Below the pieces are notes generated by a model. The model searched no databases. It saw nothing but the letters and a program-made list of their open reading frames with translations, and was not told the origin of the DNA. Below are positions 48,200 through 64,000 of a DNA stretch of 64,000 bases, one piece after another. Location: the NCBI GenBank assembly GCA_002189035.1, contig CM007991.1, positions 1,674,001 to 1,738,000 of the forward strand. The letters run 5' to 3'. The stretch comes from Utricularia gibba (taxonomy: Eukaryota; Plantae; Magnoliophyta). The position numbers and the translations under genes are program-made. Every line of letters starts with the position of its first letter. Position 1 is the stretch's first letter.

Positions 48200-50494
48200 T
48201 TAGACCTCACCTTTTTCAGGGGCATTAGCAGGATGATCTTCTTCAACCTTTTTTTCATTGTCATTAGCTTGCTCATTAGAACAATGATTTTTAATAACAG
48301 TTGAGATATCGGCTTCGGAGGCACCTGCAAGCTTAAACTGCTCAACTGCAACATCAAGATTCTTCTTCCAACCTGACAACCCAAGCTTGCACTCAAGTTG
48401 GGATCTTTCAAAAAGCATGTTGCCCCAGAAAAGCTGGATTTGCGATCTCATAATAGCAGCTTGCTCTGCTGCTTCTTCTGCAGACATTTCCCCTGGAATC
48501 ACTGTGGAATCAGATTGTGCAATATGGTCACCCTGTTTTTTCTTTCTTTTTAATAAAAGTTCATCTTTTTTGTTCTGGCTTGGATTTTTTAGCTCATTGA
48601 GTCTTTGTTCCTCCAGCTTTTCCCACATCTCAGTAGCGGCTTTCAACTTCACTTCAGCATTGTCAAAAAGATTAAGGGTCTCGGTCGGATCCCATTCTGA
48701 AAGATTCTCCTTGTTTGCCAAAACAAATGACCATTGGAGTTTGGCCATTTCAAATTGCTGCTGCCCCAGAGCCAAGAGGCCCTCGTAGAAATCTGGTTTC
48801 GTTGACAGTGACTGCTCATATTTCTCTCTTGCAAGATTATACTTTTCTTTCACCCAGTCATAAGCACTTTTCAGCTGCTCCTCCATGACCTCCTTACCGG
48901 CTGATTCATTTATTGGTATCCTTTTTCTTGCGGCACACATATGCACATTTCCCCAGTTGAAAAAAGCTAGAGCAGCAACCTCTTGAAACTTAAGAGCAGC
49001 CTTTTCAAAAAGGCCTTGAGCCTCTTCGCAAATAATGGTTTCCTCAAGGGCTTCAGAACACACCTCCATCCCAATTTCATGAAGTTCAATATGAGCATCG
49101 GGGTCAATTCCAACACGAGAGCGAAAGAGCTGTGCAAACTCAAATAACCAATCATCCATCTCAACCTCCTTGAATTCAGGGTCTTCTTGTGCTCCTGCCT
49201 TTTGAGTAATTTTCTCAGTCTTTGCAGTGTCAACAACATCCACAGAAGAATTAACTGTTAATGAATTTGAAACATTCTCATCTCCTTTAGGATCCTGAAC
49301 CTCTTCTATAAGAGTCGTGTCCTCCTCTTCTGGAACCTGAGGCTCTTGCTCGGGACTAACTTCAACAATATGCAACTTCAACATGGAAAAGGCATCTCCT
49401 TTATCAGAATCAAGGTCTTTTGGAGTGTATTTGTCAACTGTGGACTCAGCATATCTGAGTTCAGCTGAACATGTAATTGTTACCAAGTCTCCATCACTGT
49501 CCATGTACTTAATGAGCACTGATTTCGACATTGGAAAACGTTCTCTAACAACATCTCTCAGAACCTTAAAACTGCAACGCACTGGCATCCGAGCAAGTCT
49601 GATATCATGATCATATACAAGCTTCAATGGCCGGTACTGCAAATTAACCTGAGCAGATTGCTTCAATGGCTCACGGAGGTTACTCTTATGGGAATCCGAA
49701 TTTGGTTCCGAAGAGCCACTTAATGGTTTCAAGACAACTTTCGGCATCTGTGGCTTTAACTGAGGCCCATTTTCAAGCGTTGGGACAGGATACAACTTTT
49801 CTGGCTTTGGAGATGGTGCATTTTGCCCGCTTACTGAAGACAAAGACTTCTTTGAGGACACAGGACGAGCGGGCAAGCATGGTCCTAGGCCAGAAATAGG
49901 TGACCCTACAGCAGAGGCACCGAGGGCTGCTGGAGATGGGCGGCTCTGAAGGTCCTGCTGTGCATCTTGGCGAGGGCCAACCGCCATTCTCAATCTCCCA
50001 GCAATCTCCAAAGCATCACGATGATTTGGATCCTCAGCCAACAAAAGCTGAACATCTTTCATCGCCATTTCATGCTTCCCAATTGCCTCATACGCCCGAG
50101 CTCTCCGAAGAAGAGCACGGACATAAGTTGGCTGCACCTGAAGGGATAAAGTACAGTCGGATATCACAGCTTCATAGTCAATGGGCTTTATCTGCATCAA
50201 ACAGGCAGCTTTATTACTATGGAAGATTGCGCGATCAGGATGATTTCTCGGAGCAAGCTTAAGGGCATTCTCATACAGCTGAAGGGCACCCGCGTAATCC
50301 TTCTCTTGAAACTTCCTGTTACCCTCTTCCTTCATCTCATGGGCTTTTTGCAGAAGAACAGACGTGTAAAAATTCTGACCGCCGTTCGCAACAGAGACGG
50401 AAGAATTATTCGCCTCAACTGCAACTTTATCCTGGCTTTGAGTCTGGTTTGTACCATAGCCACTCTTCTTCTTCCTTCCTCCAGACTTCCCCAT
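48200..50494 (-). CDS. CLMP1: TPR + PB1 domain protein CLMP1/PHOX (764 aa, intronless CDS)
   Basis: MGKSGGRKKK start, three TPRs (KEEGNRKFQ...ALLRRARAYEA), PB1 (RPLKLVYDHDIRLA...LIKYMDSDGDLVTIT), C-terminal FQEVAALAFFNWGNVHM and QLFWGNMLFERSQ. Confidence 0.95.
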   Translation of the reverse strand: MGKSGGRKKKSGYGTNQTQSQDKVAVEANNSSVSVANGGQNFYTSVLLQKAHEMKEEGNRKFQEKDYAGALQLYENALKLAPRNHPDRAIFHSNKAACLMQIKPIDYEAVISDCTLSLQVQPTYVRALLRRARAYEAIGKHEMAMKDVQLLLAEDPNHRDALEIAGRLRMAVGPRQDAQQDLQSRPSPAALGASAVGSPISGLGPCLPARPVSSKKSLSSVSGQNAPSPKPEKLYPVPTLENGPQLKPQMPKVVLKPLSGSSEPNSDSHKSNLREPLKQSAQVNLQYRPLKLVYDHDIRLARMPVRCSFKVLRDVVRERFPMSKSVLIKYMDSDGDLVTITCSAELRYAESTVDKYTPKDLDSDKGDAFSMLKLHIVEVSPEQEPQVPEEEDTTLIEEVQDPKGDENVSNSLTVNSSVDVVDTAKTEKITQKAGAQEDPEFKEVEMDDWLFEFAQLFRSRVGIDPDAHIELHEIGMEVCSEALEETIICEEAQGLFEKAALKFQEVAALAFFNWGNVHMCAARKRIPINESAGKEVMEEQLKSAYDWVKEKYNLAREKYEQSLSTKPDFYEGLLALGQQQFEMAKLQWSFVLANKENLSEWDPTETLNLFDNAEVKLKAATEMWEKLEEQRLNELKNPSQNKKDELLLKRKKKQGDHIAQSDSTVIPGEMSAEEAAEQAAIMRSQIQLFWGNMLFERSQLECKLGLSGWKKNLDVAVEQFKLAGASEADISTVIKNHCSNEQANDNEKKVEEDHPANAPEKGEV

Positions 50495-50823
50495 TATAAC
50501 TCCCTTAAAACTCTCCCAAGACTCGAACTTTATTTCACAATATCAGCATCCAACGAGCCGCGATACAAATTGCATCACTGTTTATCCACAGCTCAAGTGA
50601 GAGTTTCTAGACAAAATGAAACTACTAAAATAAAGAACAATCACTTACTGTATCAATATCAATGGCCACCGCTATAAAAAATGAATCCAGCTCCCAAGCT
50701 CCTGAACTCGATGACCGCAACGAAAACAGAATTGGAGACAGGGGTTAAAAGATATAAGAATCTGGGTTTTCATGCGGAGAAACCGAGCGAAAAGAAAGTG
50801 GTGGTGGAAACTGAAGAGTGACT

Positions 50824-51034
50824 AAACCCTAACTCAGATTATTTATTTTCCCCTGCCATTTTTTTAACAGCCCTATTTCTCTCTGACACCATTGAAGCCT
50901 GGAATTGCTCGAGTTTAAGATTTGCACGAAGGATGACAGTCACCAACCTTGAACAAGAAAGACACAATCCTTCAAATCAAATAGGCCCAAAACCCCTAAG
51001 CCCAAAACATAAAAAGCCCACTGAAAACTGGGCT
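50824..51034. promoter_or_regulatory. Telo-box plus site II cluster upstream of CLMP1
   Basis: AAACCCTAA 50824-50832; GGCCCA 50984-50989, AGCCCA 50999-51004 and 51015-51020, TGGGCT 51029-51034. Confidence 0.6.
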
Positions 51035-53451
51035 GGCGACATCACTCTGTCATAATTGTAGGTTTCTGAGCAGAACCCGGTTGCTAGAATCCGACAGACG
51101 TCGCATGATTTGCACGGGGACGGTTACTTTCTCTGGTTCGAAAGGAATCCGCTGCTTCATCCACCGGCCACCCTCAAGAACACAACAGTTCCGTCCAATT
51201 ATTGACGGCGAAACAGATGCACGATGACGGCTGGCCTGAAGCGGCGCATGCTTCCAATAATGCGTGAACCGAGTAGTCATGGCGTGCAATGCAGTGATGC
51301 GAAGCCACTGTCAGGTACGATGATCCTGTTTCACTGTAATAAACAATGGGTCTACATGAAGTGCATCCCCGCAAAATGCCAACCAATTACGGCTCCCCCC
51401 TTCGTCTCCTGTGTGACTCCCAATTCCTGTTCGTAAGGGTAACTTTTTTCCTGTCCGTAGGGCAGTTATCTTGCCCTAATTTCTCGTGAAAAAAACCCAT
51501 TACTTTACACGCCATCTAATTTACATTGAAAATTAGAATTCTGTAACTGGAATGAGTACACGTGAAGGTTAATATATCTCAATTTTTTAAAAAATAAATA
51601 TAACTAATTAATAATGATCATCTCTTGATTTTTAGATATAATATTGATTGTTCTCATAATTTCATGTTTTTTTTACTATATAGCCGTCCCTGAAATAGAA
51701 GCACTATTCTTGATGGGGTGGCGCCGACTTGGACTTTGTACGTCTTTGGTGAATTTCGACACATGTTTGTGTAGGAAAAGTTGCATGTGGATTAATTAGA
51801 CTTATAATACTAGCGATTCATCGTTTATTTGACTTCATAAACCCATTTATTTTTTTCATATTTTAAAATTTTTTATCATATTAAGGTACCTCCTATTTCA
51901 TCCATGTGACTTGTCTATATATGACATATGTTTACAAATATATTGAATAATTTGAGTGGTTGCATGTGCATATTCTTTCTAATAAACCATCTCAAATTAT
52001 CTTCACAAATATTATTTTTCTAAGATTAATCATTATTTAAAAAGAAAACATTTAACTCTATCCAAAAAAACAACTTTTGTTGCATCAATCAAATCAAAGA
52101 CAGACCATGTTACTATACCAACAGAGCCAGTGGAGAATTTTAATAATTGATAAATATGAATATGTGTGTAAAAGAAATTAATGATGATCCCAGAGTTGAC
52201 TGAGGTCTGAAAACAAAAAAAAATCAACATCTTTCATAGATTCTTTCATGAATAATATATGATAGATTTCAGGTATTATTATGTATCCCTAAAAACGCCA
52301 AAAAAAAAAAAAACACATACACATGAAAAAAGGACAATGATACAACATATCAATTTTGTTATGAAAATTGCTAATTTATGTTACATCTTTTTTATACTTT
52401 CTAAAAATGTCACAATTTCAATTTTTTTCCCCTATTTTCCTCTATTTGTAATTTGATCCAATAGTTATCAGTTTGTATGGTACATGAAATGATATATTTG
52501 AAAACTAATGTCAAATTAATGCAATTCATAAAAAATATAATAAGAAATTATCTGTTATTAGTTTCAAATTTGACTATAAAAAAGGATATCATTCATTAAT
52601 ACAAGACTGCTTATGTCAAACTATTTTTAATGTTATATAGAATAACAAAAGTAGGATAAAATCTCTGAAGATTTGATATGACACATGTGAACTAAATTGA
52701 ATTAAAAGCTTACATAATATGTAAGTAAACATAAAATATGAGAGAATTAAAATACTATGAAAAATATGTTACACAAATCACTATTTTTCGAATCAAAAAA
52801 TGACACGTTTGAAAAAAACTGAATTCGTTGGTGGTGAGCAACAATAATTGTATGTAATTTGACTATGGTATTAACAATAATTAGGGTTGGCACTGGATTG
52901 ATGAATCTAGTCCAAACATGGCTTGCCGCAATGGGATCATGTCTCGACCCATGAATGATGTTTTGTTAGTTCATGCCCAGATTCCTGTCTCCCTCATCAT
53001 CATTCTTGTTTATGGGATTGAACGTGCGTTTCTCATAAATTTTAATTAGTACAAAAAAATTAATAAATTAAAATTATATTTGAAGTATTGGAATAAAAAT
53101 AGGAGATTGAGGATATGAATATTGGGTTTTTTTAAAAAAATTAATAACCTTGATTCGGAGAATAATCATATGGTTTAGAATCGTTGCAAATCATAGTATC
53201 TATTAATTTCGAATTAATTTGATTAATATAGGGATTAAGTTGTTAATGGAATTTTCATTTTACTCTATTTCGTTGACAATCATTTTTTAAAATTTATTGT
53301 AATTAAGTCGAATTAAAAGATTTAAGTGTATTTAAATATTTTTTCCTTTTTTTGAGAAAAAAAGGAAAGCTTTCCACAATGAAGTCTCACCTATAAATCC
53401 CCGCTAAGGGTTCTTCCCTGTCACCACACAAACCAATATCTGGGAAACCCG

Positions 53452-54643
<1,192 letters not shown>

Positions 54644-55375: not shown

Positions 55376-55787
55376 ATGGCCACTGCGGAGGTGAACTTCC
55401 CCTTCTTTTCCAGCGTTATGTTTACTTGTGTTTCATGTTTGGATCTCCAATCTCTTCTTTCAGGTTGAATCTGTTCAAGTGCAGGTTGAGGACCTGGGAA
55501 TCTCCCAACCTGTGGAGGCTGAGAAGCAAGAGGCGCAGGTAGAGGTTGAACAGGAGAAAGCGGAGGAGGTCACTGCTGAGACTGAGTTCATTGCCGAGGC
55601 TGAACCGGAAAAGGTGGAACATTCCACTGCTGAAACTGAACCGGAGAAGGTGGAGGAAGCTGATCCGGAAGAAGCGGGGGAAGCTGAACCGGTAGAGGTG
55701 GAGGCAGCCACTGCTGGTGCTGAACCAGAAGAAGGGGTCGCGGCGGAGCCTGCGCCGGAAGATGGGCCAGCTGAGAAAGGCGAGTGA
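55376..55787 (+). CDS. Small acidic Glu/Ala/Pro-rich protein (CCaP / vacuolar Ca-binding-related / Hev b5-like), 112 aa; exons 55376-55390, 55464-55787
   Basis: MATAE|VESVQ start via a 15-nt first exon, repeated AEPEKVE/EPEE units, strongly acidic composition, TATA-like TATAAATA at about 55318. Confidence 0.85.
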
Positions 55788-57119
55788 TGGATCCCTCTGT
55801 TGTCTATGCCATGTGGTGTTCTCTGTTTTGCGATCGCTGTTGGATTTTCATTCCATAATATAAATAAGATATGACTAGTATCAAAACTTGCATTTGTTCC
55901 TGCCATAAGAAACCTATCTTGTTTAATCTGCAAGCTTAGCTAGTTCCTCTGCTTTAGGGTTCTTCACCTGACTTATAAATCACAATATCACATTTGGATT
56001 TCTAACAATCTTCACGATTAGTGACTCAATAAACCTGGTTAGGATGAAGGATTGGGTGATAAGATTTATAAATGACTTTTATCTGAAATTGCAACCATGA
56101 TTTTAAAATAATTATGAATTAGATTTTGCCACGTTATTATATTATCAAATTAAAATCACAATTTTATGATTAATTAAAGTAGAAATAATACTCATAATAA
56201 TAAAAGTATGAAATAAAAATATAGATATATAATTTAGAAATTCAGTTGAAAAATAGAATGCCCTTCCATTATATTGGTAATTAAAAATTGCTGGGTTGCT
56301 CCTCATTCATTATTTCATAAATTTTAATGTCATGTAAAACCCATTTGTTGAGTACGATAATTCTAAGACATGGTTGAATCTGTAAATATCTTGATATATC
56401 CTTTTATTGTTGTATATTAATTTATTGCTTATATTCAACAAAGCATGGGTACGGGTTTGATCTAACGGGTTGGTTAACATTCAACCCCATGATAAGTTAC
56501 ATGTCAAAAGCAAGATCAATTCATTAAAATATAATCATATATATATTTTTAATTTTTATTCAATAAAATAAAAAAGACTCTAGAATATTAAATCCTTGTA
56601 TTATAAGAGTCCATTTTATTAAATTTATATGCCTACTCATGAAAAATTTGTATTTTTTTTTTTTTTATGGGCAAAACCTAAGGAGCCCTTTAATGGGCTT
56701 GTTTTTTTTGTTTTATGGGCAATGAAAATAATTACGTTAATGGGTTTAATTCTTTATTTTTTTTAATTACAACGGGTCAATTTCGTACGGATTAGAATCA
56801 AGATTGGGGTTAAACCAACGAATGCATCCATGCCCATGTCAACTTTGCTATCATCGTATTAAAGTTAGAATTAGAAATATATTGTAGTTGATCAATATTT
56901 ACCACATCATGAACAATTTCCAATCAAATCATAAGAATTTTGATATTAGATTTTGTTTTATTGGGATACTATGAAAATTTATAAAATTTTCTTTGAATAC
57001 AATCACTAGTATCATATTTATATAATTACAGTTCATACATCAGTAATAACTTCTCATTATTAATACTTTCTTTTCTAAGTAATGTCTGAATTTGCCTTAT
57101 TACCATATCTCTTCATATT

Positions 57120-57893
57120 TCACTCCTCCTCCTCCTCAATTTCATCACTTCGCTTCTCTTTTGTTTTCTTCTTGGGTGCTGCCACCGGCTTCGGCTGTCC
57201 CATTGACATCCACCCACATTTGAAAGCGTTCTTCGCCCTCTTGTCCGCTTTCAGAGAACTCATCACTTTCTGAGGGTCTTTGTCTTGGATTGTGAAGGAA
57301 ATGAGAGATGACTCCTGGTCGTACTTCACATCTCGAACTTCTACACCAACCAAAAACCAGAATTCAAACTCACTAGAAAATCCAAGAGTTATGATGAACT
57401 TAAGGTGTCGTCTTTGTGACTTAATCAATATATTTACAATTAAGCAATTTATTTATTAAATAAATCATATTTTTTCAACTTATGTAACGAATAATTGAAA
57501 TAGTTAAAATTAAAATAAGTTAAGAATAAATAGAAATAAAAATATAAGTTAATTTTTAGTACAAATAAATATATTCTATAAAACACTTATTTTTACTTTA
57601 AGTCATATACGTTATAAAATAAATCACACAGATTACATACTCATACATAATTGAATAGTAACTGGTTCATCATCTACACCCACCTCGTAAATCGCCAAGA
57701 ACCGTCAAAAGCCTCTGCTTGCAATCCGAGCAGTTGGGTGAAATCTGTACAGCTTGTGTAAAAACCTGGACAATGGCGAAGCAAGTCCTGGTTACTAACC
57801 GATTGCCGACAACTCTTGTTCGATAGTACTATGAAATGTTATTTATTTTTCATGGGATGAAAAATGAAGAGTTCCACTTACTGAGCCAGACAT
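57120..57893 (-). CDS. Small heavy-metal-associated (HMA) domain protein, copy 1 (104 aa); exons 57893-57882, 57765-57684, 57340-57120
   Basis: Manual assembly MSGS|VFTQAVQISPNCSDCKQRLLTVLGDLR|EVRDVKYDQESSLISFTIQDKDPQKVMSSLK...SMGQPKP..KKKTKEK..EEEEE*. CxxC, a micro first exon and a phase-1 second intron are typical of plant HPP/HIPP genes. No CaaX motif. Confidence 0.85.
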
Positions 57894-59201
57894 GATTGAG
57901 AGAGAAGTGAGCAGAAGTACTTTGAACAAAGAAATGATATTCTGACTCGCAATTTATAGAAAATTCTAAGAAGAAAAAATCAGACTTCTACTTAGTGTTG
58001 ACTACCCAGTGAAGGAATTTGTTTATGGAAATAAGGTTCTGAAAATATATGTTGATTATGGTCATTTTATTTTTAATCACAAATGACTACGAATATAATG
58101 GGGTTGTTCTATGATTTGAGATTGTGTTTCAGATTATATATAATATTATCAATATTATGTAAATAGAATCAATTTCAGATTGTAAAACTGTTGTATGAGA
58201 TATAATAAAATTATATTATAAAATTTAATAAAATAATATATATTATAAATTTTAATAGTTATTATATAATTTAATGCTTTGATATAAATGTATTTTAAAA
58301 ATATATAAAAATTGAATAGTATAATTTTTTAATTAATCTTTTATTCAATTTCCGAAATCAATATTTAAGAAATTCAATAATTTCTAAAGTTAATTACAAA
58401 ATTTAAATTTCTGTTTTTATTACAAAACTATTAAAGATTAGAATCTTAAAAAATTAAAAAGAATCACTTTAAAAAATTGATAAAACAGAACACACCCAAT
58501 ATGCCTTTTTATGAACATACTTTTTAAAATCATTTGAGTTGATTTTGTCACAGATTGTTTGGTGGTTTAAATTTTGTATTCAGATTATCAAATTGAATTC
58601 GACAATATATAATTTATGGAATTGGGAATAATGATGATAATATTATTAGATATGAGATAAAATATACATTATATATTCAAAAATCGTGGAATTAATGAAA
58701 TTCAATTGGGTAATCGAATGCCATTCTATTACAGCGATACGTTTATGGGCCAATTACAAAATTATTGGGCCGTTTGTTACTAAGCTCGGATGCAAGCCCA
58801 TATATTATTATATAATTTTTAAATGTCATGTCAAGAGAATCCTTTTTATACATATGTCACTAAAAATCATATGAAATTCCAAGGTTGTTAGTATGCCAAT
58901 CTTGCAGACTATTTTTAATGTCTTTCTTTCTCTATTAAGGAGCTGATGCAAAATAGTTATTATATTGTAATTCACTATATTTCCATCCTAATTACAAATG
59001 TGATCCATAATTTTGAATTTCTTATTGATTTGGCTAACATAGTTGAATAAGTAAAGATTGACACCATCTTCTTGTTCTATTATAATTTGTTGCTTACATT
59101 CAATAGTACTATATAAACTTTTGAAATTTATATCATTTCAAATGTAATGTCTTGCATTCATAACCTAATTTGTAGTATTAACATATTACTTCACATCTTC
59201 C

Positions 59202-59655
59202 TCACTTCTTCTCTGCCATATCCTCATGTTGCTCATCTGTGTCTATCTCACATTCATTTTCCCTTAGGTGATCCATTAGAGATCTGATCACTGTCATAGT
59301 GCTCATATTTACTACACTGAAGGCAAGGATATTTGACCCTTCGTTGTACTGCAAATTTCGAACTCCTACAAAAAAAAAAAAAAAAAAAAGAATTCAACAT
59401 TTGAAAATCCAGAAATAATTAAATGCATCAAGCGCACCCACCTGGGAATTCCTGGAGAACCTTCGTCATCTTCTCCTTGCAAACCACGCAGTGGGGTGTA
59501 ACTTTGACAAGCTGTGCATAAACCTAGACAATTGCGAAGGAAGTGCACGTTACTAAGTGACTTCCAAGAACTCTTCTTCGATAGTACTAGGAATTGCAAT
59601 TTATTTATTTTTCATGGGATAAAAAATGAAGACTTTCACTTACTGTGTCATCCAT
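59202..59655 (-). CDS. Small HMA-domain protein, copy 2 (85 aa); exons 59655-59644, 59523-59442, 59365-59202
   Basis: Manual assembly MDDT|VYAQLVKVTPHCVVCKEKMTKVLQEFP|GVRNLQYNEGSNILAFSVVNMSTMTVIRSLMDHLRENECEIDTDEQHEDMAEKK*. Same exon sizes (12, 82 nt), phases and splice sites as copy 1. Absent from the ORF track. Confidence 0.85.
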
Positions 59656-60963
59656 GACTGAGAGGCAAATACAGTATTTTGAATGAAAAAAAAATGATTC
59701 TATAATTCGAATTTATAGAAAATTTTAATAAGAAAAAAACCCCGACTTTTACGCAGTGTTGACAATCAACTAAAGAAATTCTGTTTAAGAAAATAAGGTT
59801 AAAAAAATAATGAAATTAAATGTTAATTGATTATCGTAATTTTAGTTTTATTCACAATTTATGAATAGAGCGATGAACATGCTTTTGAAAATCATTTGAG
59901 TTGATTTTCGTCACATGATTATTAATAATAATAATAGTAACTATCATTATAATATTTGTTAAAGTAGGAATAATAATAATCAGTATTATTATTATGATAT
60001 AAAAAATATAAATTATATTATTATTTTTGAATGTCTTGTCGAGCCCATGTGCACAAAAGAATCCAGCCACGTCCACGTCATTAGTAATCATGTGGAAAAT
60101 AGTGTGACACATTTCAACGATTCCTTCGGAGTTAGAGATTGAACCCTTTCTATGAACTTTATGTTGAATGTTCACTATTTTTTTTAAAAAAAAAATCTCT
60201 ATATGGGTTCATTGTTTAGTGGACCTGGTGGCATTATTTCTATTGTAAGAAGTCCATTTTTTAATTTATCCTTAAATTAAATATATTACGTATTATAATA
60301 TGATATGTTATGGGGGTGGATCTTGAAACTTAATTTAAGGGAGGAAAAATAATTTCAAATATTGTAATTCAAGTATAAAAGGAAAAAAAATAAAATATCC
60401 TAAATTTTATTAATTTTATAATCCAAAAGGCAACTTAATTTTGCATTTATTTTACTTGTTCGGTATGGTATTAGTAGTTGAGGTGTACGTTCAGGAGACA
60501 TTGAACATTTAACAAGCTGACTGATGTGGCACTGTCCAAAAGTTGTTATCGAGGTATAGTTAAATTGATTTGATATAGTATAGTATAATATCCTAATATA
60601 TGATATAATTAATACAACCGGGTATATTTTCTTCTATTCAATTTTCGATATAGTTGCGATGTTGACATTAGGGATAAAATGTGGGGCTGAAGTGAAAAAC
60701 GGAAAAATAACAAGGACTATGCTGTAAAAAACAGATGCAACAAAACTGAAAACAGTCTGGAGAAGCGAAGAGGGGCGGGCGGGCACGGGCGCGTTGTATC
60801 CGTTTCTTGAACAAAGGAGCGTTCTCGCTTTTTTGTGTTCAAAAAACCGAGGAAGCCCCAAACTCAGTAACAATCTCCTGGAGAGTTATACTGAGGAGAA
60901 CGACGGTATGCGGTGAAACCCTTTGAAGGCGTCAAGAATTACTCTCGAAATTTGAGGCTGTCC

Positions 60964-63942
60964 ATGGCTCAAAAGTTGCAACAGCAGCTGAAGGAGCTGG
61001 GATCAAAGTTGGGGAGCCCTCCAACTTCGAAAGATGCTCTTGTGAAACTCTTGAAGGTGAGAAGTTGTATTCTTTGTTTTGAATGCGGCTGGAGGGATGT
61101 TTTTCTGATGCGCGTGATGAAATTATTTTGTTAGGTTGGGCTTGTTTTTGGATGCATGTTTACAATTCATGAAACTTTCAGCGGCCTGAGACATGTGGTC
61201 ACGAATTAGGGTTCTTGTTTTGGTTTTTATTCGTGGAAAGAGACGGAGAGTTGGAGTCGTTGTGTGTTTGTGATTATGACCTTTTCTGCTCAAATGGTCT
61301 GCGATATGCACTTTTTATATAATATGCGGCCGGTTCGTCGCAGTTGAGACTCCAGTTTCGTAAATATGTTTCTGTATTGTTCGATCTTGTTTTGGAAAAT
61401 GTAGAGCAGGAAACATGTCTTGTATTAGGATCCACTTAACTCTGATTGTAGTCGTCTCTAGTCTTGTAAAGCTGGTTGGGCAGTGTTCAATTGTGTTTTG
61501 GATAAGTGCAGCATGAACAATATCTTTTGTATTACGACTCCACTTAACCTTGATTACAGTGTTGGGTATGGTAGAAGGTATTCGTGTTTTATCCTTCTTC
61601 ACTTTTAGATGTGATGTGGAACAATGTCTTTTGTAATGTGGGTGAAGTGGCGGCTCTTTTGATCAAGTATTGCATTGGGATTTCACAGTTTATTGCACTG
61701 GTGGCTCTTTTGACTGGCTTTTCTTGATACCTGAATTTTTATAAATGCGTACGTGATGTTGGAATCATTACTGTATTAAATTACGATTAACTTCCTTGTT
61801 TTTTTAGAGAAATTCCCTGCTTCCCGTAACCGTCCAAGCTGCTATTTGATTGCTTAATCTCATTTTATTGACTCAATTACAGCAAGCTGCAGCATGTCTT
61901 TCTGAATTAGAACAGTCTCCTTCTAAGCTAGTGATGGAATCCATGCAACCTCTTATAAATGCCATTTCCAAGCCTGAACTTTTGAAGCATCAAGATCGGG
62001 AGGTCAAGCTTTTTGTTGCTTCTTGTGCATGCGAGATTACTCGAATTAGTGCACCTGAAGCTCCTTATCATGATGATGTTCTAAAGGTCGTTTCTGCTGC
62101 ACAACCTATTCATCGTGCCCACAGTCACTTGAATTTTCTTATTTTTGGATACCCTGTGTGACATATGTTTTATTTCAGGATATTTTTCAGCTAATTTTGA
62201 ATACTCTTGGTGGCTTAAGTGATATGAGTTCCTCGTCGTTTGGAAGGAGGGTTGTTGTTCTTGAAACTTTGGCACGTTACAGATCATGTGTAATGATGCT
62301 GGATCTTGAATGTGACGATCTTATCAATGAAATGTTCAAAAATTTTTTTGATATTGTCAGGTATGATTTTCTTCTCTCATATTTATGCCCACATGAAGTT
62401 TGTATTTAATTCTGTCCACTTCTTTTTTGGTGCATTGTGTTTTCTGGGTAAATTGTGCCAACTATTAGTGTTGCGCTGCTATTTGCTGCACATGAATACT
62501 GGTTTGCTGCCAACTTTTTTAGTGCATGTTTTTATGTCTACTGACACTTCAAGCTGTCCTTATAAACAGAGATGACCACCCTGATAATTTGGTGTGTTCA
62601 ATGGAAGCAATCATGGAAGTCTTGCTCGAAGAAAGTGAAGACGTGCCTGATGAACTCTTGCTCATATTGTTAGCTGAATTAGATAATGATAAGAAGGTAA
62701 AATTTTTTATGTTTTCTCCAACATTCATAGGTTTTCATCCAGTCAAATGTATATTGAGAGTTGAGGTGGGTGTAGGGTGCCAAAATGGCTGCAAGGAGGC
62801 TTGCTATGAACGTGATTCAGAAGTGTGCGACAAAACTGGAGCCTAGCATTAAGCAGTTTCTAGTGTCTGCAATGTCTGGTGACAGCAATCCCTTGCAGCA
62901 TGGAATCAGTTATCATGGTGTACTCTATAATGTTTATTGCTGTGCTCCACAAGTGGTAGCAGGAGTGATCCCTTATCTTACTGGAGAGTTGCTGGTAATC
63001 ATCCTACTCTGGAATTTTAGATTTAACATCATGACGTAGAAGACCCTCTTTAATTAAAAAACTGTGTTCTATATACTGAATTTTTTTTTTCTGGGTGCGG
63101 CAACATGGAAAAGCTCTACCTTTTGCATTTATCCTTGTATTTATTGCTTACAGGGGTGTTGTAACTGACATTTTGGAGGAACTTTATAGTGAAGCTAATT
63201 ATTCTTGACATATTTCTCAACTGTGTCCTTATTTTAAAAAATCCGGTTCTATGATGTTTTTCTCATATTTGGACACTGCCACACAGAGTGACCACCTGGA
63301 AGCCCGTTTGAAGGCAGTTGGCTTAGTGGGCAACCTGGTATCTCTCCCAGGATCTACTCTTTCTGAAGTGTTCAGACCAGTTTTTATGGAGTTTCTGAAG
63401 AGATTGACTGATAGAGCAGTTGAAGTTAGAATGTCCGTCCTGGAGCATGCTAGATTATGCCTTTTGGAGAATCCTTCCAGGCCGGAAGCTCATCAAATTA
63501 TTTGTAAGAAAGAGATAATCTACAAATGTAATGAGGCTCTTTTATCTGATGAATCTAAATTTATTTTCAGCTGCTCTTTCTGAACGGTTTCTGGATTATG
63601 ATGAAAATGTTCGTAAGCAAGTGGTCTCAGTTATTTGTGATGTGGCATGTCATTCCCTCACATCCGTTCCGATTGACACTATTAAACTGCTCTCTGAACG
63701 GCTACGCGACAAATCTGTAAGAATAATTTATTTTCCACTATTTTCTCCCATTCCTTCATGGCTTATTTTCTGATAATTTTTGATGTTAATGCACAGCCTC
63801 TTGTTAAAAAGTACACTTTGGAGAGGTTAGCAGATATACATAAGGCATTCTTCCTGAAGCATTTTAGTGATTCAAGAAGGAATAAAGACTATATTTGGAT
63901 TGCTGGCAAAGTATTGAGGTGCTTCTACGATAAGGATTTCAG
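60964..63942 (+). CDS. PDS5: Sister chromatid cohesion protein PDS5 (5' part, runs off the window); exons 60964-61056, 61883-62086, 62179-62360, 62570-62696, 62776-62994, 63287-63503, 63571-63716, 63797-63942
   Basis: MAQKLQQQLKELGSKL...LLKHQDREVKLFVASCACEITRISAPEAPY, LETLARYRSCVMMLDLEC, VIPYLTGELL, FLKRLTDRAVEVR, RFLDYDENVRKQVV. All phases are consistent. Confidence 0.97.
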
Positions 63943-64000
63943 GTGACATTGTAATCTTTGATCCAGCGTTATATTCTATGTTATTGGTGCTTATACCACT

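Follow-up and report, generated by a model that had tools for sequence, protein, structure and literature searches.

Tandem HMA-like genes of Utricularia gibba with amino-acid divergence apparently above that of their introns, promoters, and silent sites

Two small three-exon genes follow one another, collinear and in head-to-tail order, along the minus strand of a 64,000-nucleotide stretch of Utricularia gibba DNA (contig CM007991.1, positions 1,674,001 to 1,738,000; this whole stretch is called the window below, and positions are counted from its first letter). Copy A occupies 57120-57893 (104 amino acids) and copy B 59202-59655 (85 amino acids). The amino-acid sequences of the two predicted proteins have diverged faster than their silent sites and non-coding DNA, the proxies that we used for neutral change. 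We estimate a probability of about 0.5 that the two genes form a real tandem pair of the HPP type, in which one duplication was followed by adaptive divergence of the protein surfaces, with the fold, the cysteines, and the gene structure retained. HPPs are HMA-only plant proteins without a prenylation motif, and the Arabidopsis family includes ATX1, CCH, and CCS (PMC12835825).

Results

Structure of the two genes

Gene models were rebuilt from the window sequence on the minus strand of 57100-59665. The copies are spaced 1758-1762 nt apart, and an independent repeat search of the window also reports the duplication. The frames are open in both copies, all four introns are of the GT..AG type, and the two genes have in common a 12-nt exon 1, an 82-nt exon 2 ending in phase 1, the intron phases, and a CxxC motif. 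Each begins with a 12-nt coding micro-exon that is followed by a GTAAGTG donor. The CxxC motif reads NCSDC in copy A and HCVVC in copy B, with C16 and C19 invariant and placed as in the HMA profile. The models confirm what the first-pass annotation had described, namely intact frames together with shared exon sizes, phases, splice sites, and CxxC. The tails of the two genes differ in length by a net 57 nt, in frame; copy A ends in EIEEEEE and copy B in MAEKK, and a Lys-rich stretch resembling a nuclear localization signal is found in copy A only. Intron 2 of copy B contains an unbroken run of 20 T residues (gene strand; 59370-59389) immediately 5' of its GTAG acceptor.

Divergence of exons compared to non-coding DNA

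Intron 1 differs between the copies by 18 substitutions and one 4-nt indel, with 98 of 116 positions identical (84.5%). Exon 2 differs at 28 of its 82 nt (54 identical) and exon 3 at 32 of its first 90 nt (58 identical), for an overall exon identity of ∼65%. By Fisher tests, the frequency of differences in the exons (64/184) exceeded both that in intron 1 (18/116, p = 0.0003) and that in the 200-nt upstream region (46/194, p = 0.02). The 57 aligned codons comprise 13 that are identical, 4 with synonymous changes only, and 40 that change the amino acid; the differences at codon positions 1, 2, and 3 number 26, 18, and 16, and the two proteins are 27% identical. All of these counts, for intron 1 (∼84% in the first-pass annotation) as well as for the exons, codon classes, and codon positions, were reproduced from the earlier reading. 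CpG hypermutation of the exons was considered as a cause and rejected, because the excess persists without CpG sites (exon divergence of 0.339 versus 0.142 for intron 1 and 0.223 for the upstream region).

Selection was assessed pairwise on two short sequences, using the 57 aligned codons or, for our own GY94 fit, codons 1-61. Four methods (NG86, LWL85, YN00, and Biopython maximum likelihood; 57 codons) yielded a nonsynonymous divergence (dN) of 0.52-0.58 and a synonymous divergence (dS) of 0.24-0.33, corresponding to a ratio (ω) of 1.5-2.4. The maximum-likelihood fit of the GY94 model gave ω of 2.6-2.8, with 2ΔlnL of 4.9-5.4 compared to ω = 1 (p ∼0.02), and ω ≤ 0.5 was rejected at p < 1e-4. 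When sequences were simulated under ω = 1, the observed ratio of the proportions of nonsynonymous and synonymous differences (pN/pS, 1.53) was reached in 2-3% of the runs (p = 0.02-0.03). Exons 2 and 3 taken separately provided values of 1.5 and 1.7. The proportion of nonsynonymous differences (pN = 0.379) also exceeded the divergence of the non-coding DNA in intron 1 and the upstream region (0.206, p = 1e-4). The suggestion that dN/dS is above 1 is thus upheld for the pairwise comparison, which involves two sequences only. We conclude that pairwise ω exceeds 1 (1.5-2.8), and that this excess is marginal once the picking of the case by a scan is counted.

Evidence for a single duplication

Synonymous sites and non-coding DNA have diverged to the same extent (pS = 0.247 compared to 0.206 for intron 1 plus the upstream region, p = 0.54). 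The four putatively neutral classes of site (upstream region, intron 1, synonymous sites, and the end of intron 2) are homogeneous (chi-square p ∼0.2), and their pooled Jukes-Cantor distance is 0.24 substitutions per site. The 3' end of intron 2 is identical at 26 of 30 positions (87%), with a local alignment score that was reached by 2 of 500 shuffles. The diverged exon 2 is flanked at either end by conserved non-coding DNA, in an alternating pattern and not a single switch, and a gene conversion tract confined to the 5' part therefore does not fit. Such a tract was rejected on these grounds, given the identity at the 3' end of intron 2 and a pS close to the non-coding divergence. An RNA gene as the reason for the conservation of intron 1 was likewise rejected: there was no Rfam match, and the folding z-scores relative to shuffled sequences (-0.4 to -1.0) were not unusual.

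Because pS matches the non-coding divergence, the neutral classes are homogeneous, the divergence alternates along the unit, and intron 1 has no RNA family or stable fold, we conclude from the sequence comparison that the pair would derive from a single duplication. Its age, when commonly assumed plant mutation rates are used, would be very roughly 8-30 million years. The first-pass annotation had suggested a comparison of intron and synonymous divergence, which proved equal, and had offered homogenization of the intron by gene conversion as an alternative, which is not needed given these values and the conserved end of intron 2. Homology in the locus-wide alignment spans the whole unit, including a far-upstream block, the promoter and 5' untranslated region, and both introns; the 3' flank after the stop codon has weak homology over its first tens of nucleotides, which alone is not significant compared to shuffles. 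One local duplication of a ∼1.8-kb unit (promoter, gene, and 3' flank) would have produced both paralogues. No further copies of the unit were found in the window.

Coding character and retained positions

The exons have a GC content of 43-48% and a GC3 of 0.49-0.54, in the range of the neighboring genes, whereas the introns and flanks are 30-39% GC. The first 183 coding nucleotides contain no indel, although the rate in non-coding DNA would predict 4.7 (P = 0.009), and no stop codon has arisen (P = 0.05-0.14 for random substitution at the observed divergence). Of the 22 positions with a hydrophobic residue in copy A, 21 also have one in copy B (P = 0.001, simulated from A), and the two proteins score higher on BLOSUM62 than random expectation (P = 0.03). 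The two cysteines are invariant, as is the proline ahead of them, and a strand-like and helix-like hydrophobic periodicity is conserved between the copies. On the basis of the retained frames, hydrophobic positions, cysteines, and proline, the hydrophobic core of the predicted proteins looks to have been kept and the polar positions along the whole domain to have been rewritten.

Relationship to HMA proteins

The top Pfam match of both copies is HMA (PF00403 / IPR006121), in the same register across the CxxC motif. Residues 15-46 of copy B align with profile positions 8-39 (E = 4.6e-4, 21.0 bits), and residues 16-49 of copy A with positions 9-42 (E = 0.069, 14.0 bits); the cut-off is 24.8 bits. 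Intron 2 splits the putative domain, and a Pfam search with single exon pieces returned no match. We regard the agreement as meaningful, though not as formal membership, because the copies are only 27% identical and yet match in the same register. The earlier assignment to HMA therefore stands as to the best family and the placement of the CxxC motif, and falls short as to score. A C-terminal CaaX motif is absent from both copies, neither of which has a cysteine near the C terminus, and by the published definitions (PMC12835825) the proteins would be of the HPP and not the HIPP type. Copies A and B would accordingly be small HMA-like CxxC proteins without a prenylation end.

Like HPPs, the predicted products are ∼85-105 amino acids long, with a single small putative domain, the CxxC motif in the predicted loop that follows strand 1, and no CaaX motif. 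Unlike HPPs, they score under the Pfam gathering cut-off, carry Pro where a Met is usual at the second residue ahead of the first Cys, have no detectable sequence relative in searches with exon pieces, and appear to evolve at the protein level above the neutral rate.

Promoters and flanks of the duplicated unit

The positions of the features are collected in Table 1. A TATA-like sequence, CTATAAAT, is kept in both copies ∼60 nt 5' of each ATG (57951-57959, + strand, in copy A). The best conserved part of the unit is the far-upstream block of ∼51 nt, which the repeat search scores at 94% over 36 nt and which contains a 7-nt inverted repeat (AAAATCA ... TGATTTT, gene strand); it may be a shared cis-element. 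A W-box, TTGACT (57998-58003), is located ∼100 nt 5' of the ATG of copy A, and the homologous site of copy B (59759-59764) reads TTGACA. A stretch of this length should contain one core of this kind by chance alone, and the W-box is a mere hint of WRKY control.

Copy A has two AT-rich stretches that are absent from copy B, each with just weak AT-rich similarity to the rest of the window; they represent insertions in A or deletions in B. A separate AT-rich element occurs at three weakly similar places (56141-56271, 58584-58731, and 59946-60022; 69-75%). The one at 56141-56271, on the downstream side of copy A, is similar to the sequence that immediately precedes each unit, and no HMA-like coding sequence was found beside it.

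Table 1. Positions of the two HMA-like genes, their flanking elements, and neighboring genes in the window
Feature	Position	Strand	Description
Copy A exon 1	57882..57893	-	12 nt, ATG + 3 codons, MSGS; size and donor as in copy B
Copy A intron 1	57766..57881	-	116 nt, GT..AG; 98/116 identical to intron 1 of B, one 4-nt indel
Copy A exon 2	57684..57765	-	82 nt; putative beta1, CxxC loop NCSDC, and helix 1; Pfam HMA alignment begins here
Copy A intron 2	57341..57683	-	343 nt, phase 1; ends align with the 76-nt intron 2 of B
Copy A exon 3	57120..57340	-	221 nt with stop; putative beta2-beta3-helix 2-beta4, Lys-rich then Glu-rich tail
Copy B exon 1	59644..59655	-	12 nt, MDDT
Copy B intron 1	59524..59643	-	120 nt, GT..AG
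Copy B exon 2	59442..59523	-	82 nt; CxxC loop HCVVC
Copy B intron 2	59366..59441	-	76 nt, phase 1, 20-T tract ahead of acceptor
Copy B exon 3	59202..59365	-	164 nt with stop; acidic tail without Lys-rich stretch
Copy A 5' untranslated region and proximal promoter	57894..58093	-	148/194 identical to 59656-59868 (76% over ∼200 nt)
Copy B 5' untranslated region and promoter	59656..59923	-	TATA-like block 59710-59718; far-upstream conserved block 59873-59923
Far-upstream conserved block of copy A	58511..58560	-	∼90% identical over 51 nt to 59873-59923
AT-rich stretch in copy A promoter, absent from B	58095..58510	.	∼416 nt; single large alignment gap between two conserved blocks
AT-rich stretch in copy A intron 2, absent from B	about 57385-57650	-	∼267 nt
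Phox/CLMP1	48200-50494	-	single exon; best protein matches, with 71-72% identity, from Perilla, Sesamum, Paulownia, and Handroanthus
2OG-Fe(II) oxygenase, ACC-oxidase-like	53453-54643	+
Acidic ORF	55377-55787	+	two exons, very acidic, Glu/Ala/Pro-rich, no Pfam match; between oxygenase and copy A
PDS5 (sister-chromatid cohesion)	60913-64000	+	multi-exon, runs past window end; PF20168 on three exon ORFs

Genomic neighborhood

The window is very gene-dense, and the pair itself is located in an AT-rich island, with the start of PDS5 ∼1.2 kb upstream of copy B. The best protein matches of the Phox/CLMP1 gene (71-72% identity) place the plant in the Lamiales and indicate that its own proteins are missing from the database searched. 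The Phox/CLMP1 and 2OG-Fe(II) oxygenase genes are arranged head to head here (48200-54643). In Sesamum, at both Paulownia paralogues, and in Erythranthe, these genes are tail to tail and are followed by fibrillin and Ovate genes, so that the local gene order at those Phox/CLMP1 loci differs from that of the window. The difference in orientation indicates a probable local rearrangement adjoining the HMA pair in the U. gibba lineage. When the orthologous Phox/CLMP1 loci with 10-kb flanks were searched by tblastn (two Sesamum assemblies, the two Paulownia paralogues, and Erythranthe), no HMA-like sequence was detected.

Discussion

Since the proposed duplication, the reading frames, splice sites, exon sizes, two cysteines, and hydrophobic core positions have been kept, while replacement at polar positions across the whole domain outpaced change at silent and non-coding sites. 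Candidate drivers of such replacement include pressure from pathogen effectors and neofunctionalization toward new partners or metals.

Several observations weigh against this reading. The Fisher test on the NG86 counts was weaker than the other tests (p = 0.09), and the silent-site comparison involves ∼10 synonymous differences in two short sequences. The test that gave p = 1e-4 takes the promoter and intron 1 as evolving neutrally, and a p value of ∼0.02 is weak because the case was chosen as the extreme of a very large scan. The test for retention of the hydrophobic core was not significant when simulated from copy B (P = 0.18). Both HMA matches are below the Pfam gathering cut-off and align with the model over roughly its first two thirds. 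No homologue of either copy was found in any of the searches with exon pieces: the word-indexed protein search returned no candidates for exon 3 of A or of B, an exhaustive phmmer search of 1.84 billion representatives with 51 residues of copy A exon 3 gave 0 matches, a sequence search of the PDB with exon pieces gave nothing meaningful, and the ESM Atlas scores for exon 3 of A and of B were uninformative (≤0.57). Finally, no transcript of either copy was seen in five RNA assemblies of U. gibba (assembled contigs from few samples); the 2.6-kb stretch was absent, and no contig aligned to it. Of the words sampled from the adjoining 8 kb, which include the Phox, oxygenase, and acidic ORF genes, 29-36% occur in the same five assemblies, and the organism and the neighboring transcripts are therefore represented in them. 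The pair is thus not appreciably expressed in those samples, a result that does not imply silence everywhere, and expression is probably conditional or tissue-restricted. The first-pass annotation, which called for a check of spliced transcripts, had itself named missing expression of one copy as a refutation of its proposal, and this result touches that point.

Two other explanations fit the data poorly. One of them invokes two ages: the exons would date an old duplication, whereas the promoter, exon 1, and intron 1 would have been constrained by regulatory functions or homogenized later through gene conversion or unequal exchange, making the young look of the 5' part only apparent. In its favor, regulatory elements are frequent in promoter-proximal DNA and first introns, and intron 1 (84.5%) and the 51-nt far-upstream block (90%) are the best conserved parts of the unit. 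It predicts, however, a dS far above the intron value and a dN below dS, whereas exons 2-3 have a pS of 0.25 and a dS of 0.24-0.33 compared to 0.21 for the non-coding DNA. In addition, the 3' end of intron 2, located 3' of exon 2, is likewise 87% identical, the neutral classes are homogeneous, and intron 1 is without an RNA family or stable structure. These results already disfavor the two-age model, which we consider very unlikely. We give almost no credence to the other explanation, that the pair is duplicated non-coding DNA or a transposon fragment in which the shared frames, splice-like sites, and CxxC are coincidental. The lack of RNA and of any homologue, the sub-threshold Pfam matches, and the setting in an AT-rich island would all suit it, but the homologous open frames have survived 35% nucleotide divergence without any exon indel and their GC and GC3 are coding-like, unlike the flanks. 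Four GT..AG pairs, the 12- and 82-nt exon sizes, and the TATA-like box ∼60 nt before the ATG have all been kept, the hydrophobic periodicity is conserved, and proteins with just 27% identity match one Pfam family in the same register. Moreover, the unit is without other copies in the window.

The main rival is a relaxation of constraint, in which one or both copies became redundant after the duplication and drift near ω = 1. The observed excess would then combine sampling noise with the fact that the scan singled out an extreme, and the two genes may even be silent and heading for decay. This possibility, which we hold to be doubtful, gains from the absence of transcripts in RNA assemblies that contain the neighboring genes, from the Fisher p value of 0.09, and from the lack of a detectable homologue for either copy. 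Copy B also has a shorter tail and is without the C-terminal part that is most HMA-like in copy A. Drift near neutrality is countered by the tests that disfavor ω = 1 (p ∼0.02-0.03) and by the excess of pN over non-coding divergence (p = 1e-4). It is countered also by the signs of retention, as there are no indels in 183 exon nucleotides (P = 0.009), no stop codons (P = 0.05-0.14), and a tail difference that is in frame, and the hydrophobic positions and both cysteines are kept beyond random expectation. If one third of the sites are constrained, then the rest must exceed ω = 1 even when the mean is ∼1.

Adaptive divergence of the pair can be compared to what is described for related proteins. 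HPPs and HIPPs are often targeted by fungal, oomycete, and bacterial effectors and by a viral movement protein (PMC12835825, PMC7961100, PMC11611257). The HIPPs known as pathogen targets (rice OsHIPP19/20, Pi21, and HIPP43; NbHIPP26) have the type of domain that is predicted for copies A and B; in contrast to them, copies A and B have no prenylation motif and no Pro-rich region. The adaptive evolution of integrated HMA domains under effector pressure was studied in the rice immune receptors (NLRs) Pik-1 and RGA5 (PMC8294853, PMC6233088). Those domains reside inside NLR receptors, whereas copies A and B are free-standing with no NLR beside them. Among eudicot HIPP duplicates, which include tandem ones, Ka/Ks is mostly <1, and values above 1 were already reported for a minority, such as cassava MeHIPP12 and others (PMC12940333). 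The cassava study compared annotated and expressed genes between accessions, whereas the present case is one unannotated pair of paralogues, in which the divergence of intron and promoter serves as an internal neutral reference. The effector arms race put forward in the first-pass annotation is compatible with the literature on the targeting of HPPs and HIPPs (PMC12835825, PMC7961100, PMC11611257, PMC8294853). A more specific version appears unlikely to us: in this small-genome plant of the Lamiales, the pair could act as a free-standing module of small HMA proteins, a target or decoy engaged in an arms race with effectors of pathogens or symbionts, and could belong to a genome-wide set of small-HMA tandem arrays situated in AT-rich islands.

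HMA-only proteins are recurrent targets of effectors and the source of baits integrated in rice immune receptors. To our knowledge, evidence for the adaptive evolution of free-standing HMA proteins is sparse, above all in eudicots. Currently, the pair provides one marginally significant pairwise signal from two tiny genes without transcripts in the RNA assemblies examined. It is nevertheless a compact case with an internal control, as the promoter, two introns, and silent sites give one neutral divergence that only the replacement sites exceed. If the arms-race version were true, the HMA-effector story of the grasses would extend to free-standing eudicot HPPs with ω above 1. If tests of expression and of orthologues hold, then copies A and B would be a convenient system for asking what exerts selection on a small HMA protein, and on which of its surfaces.

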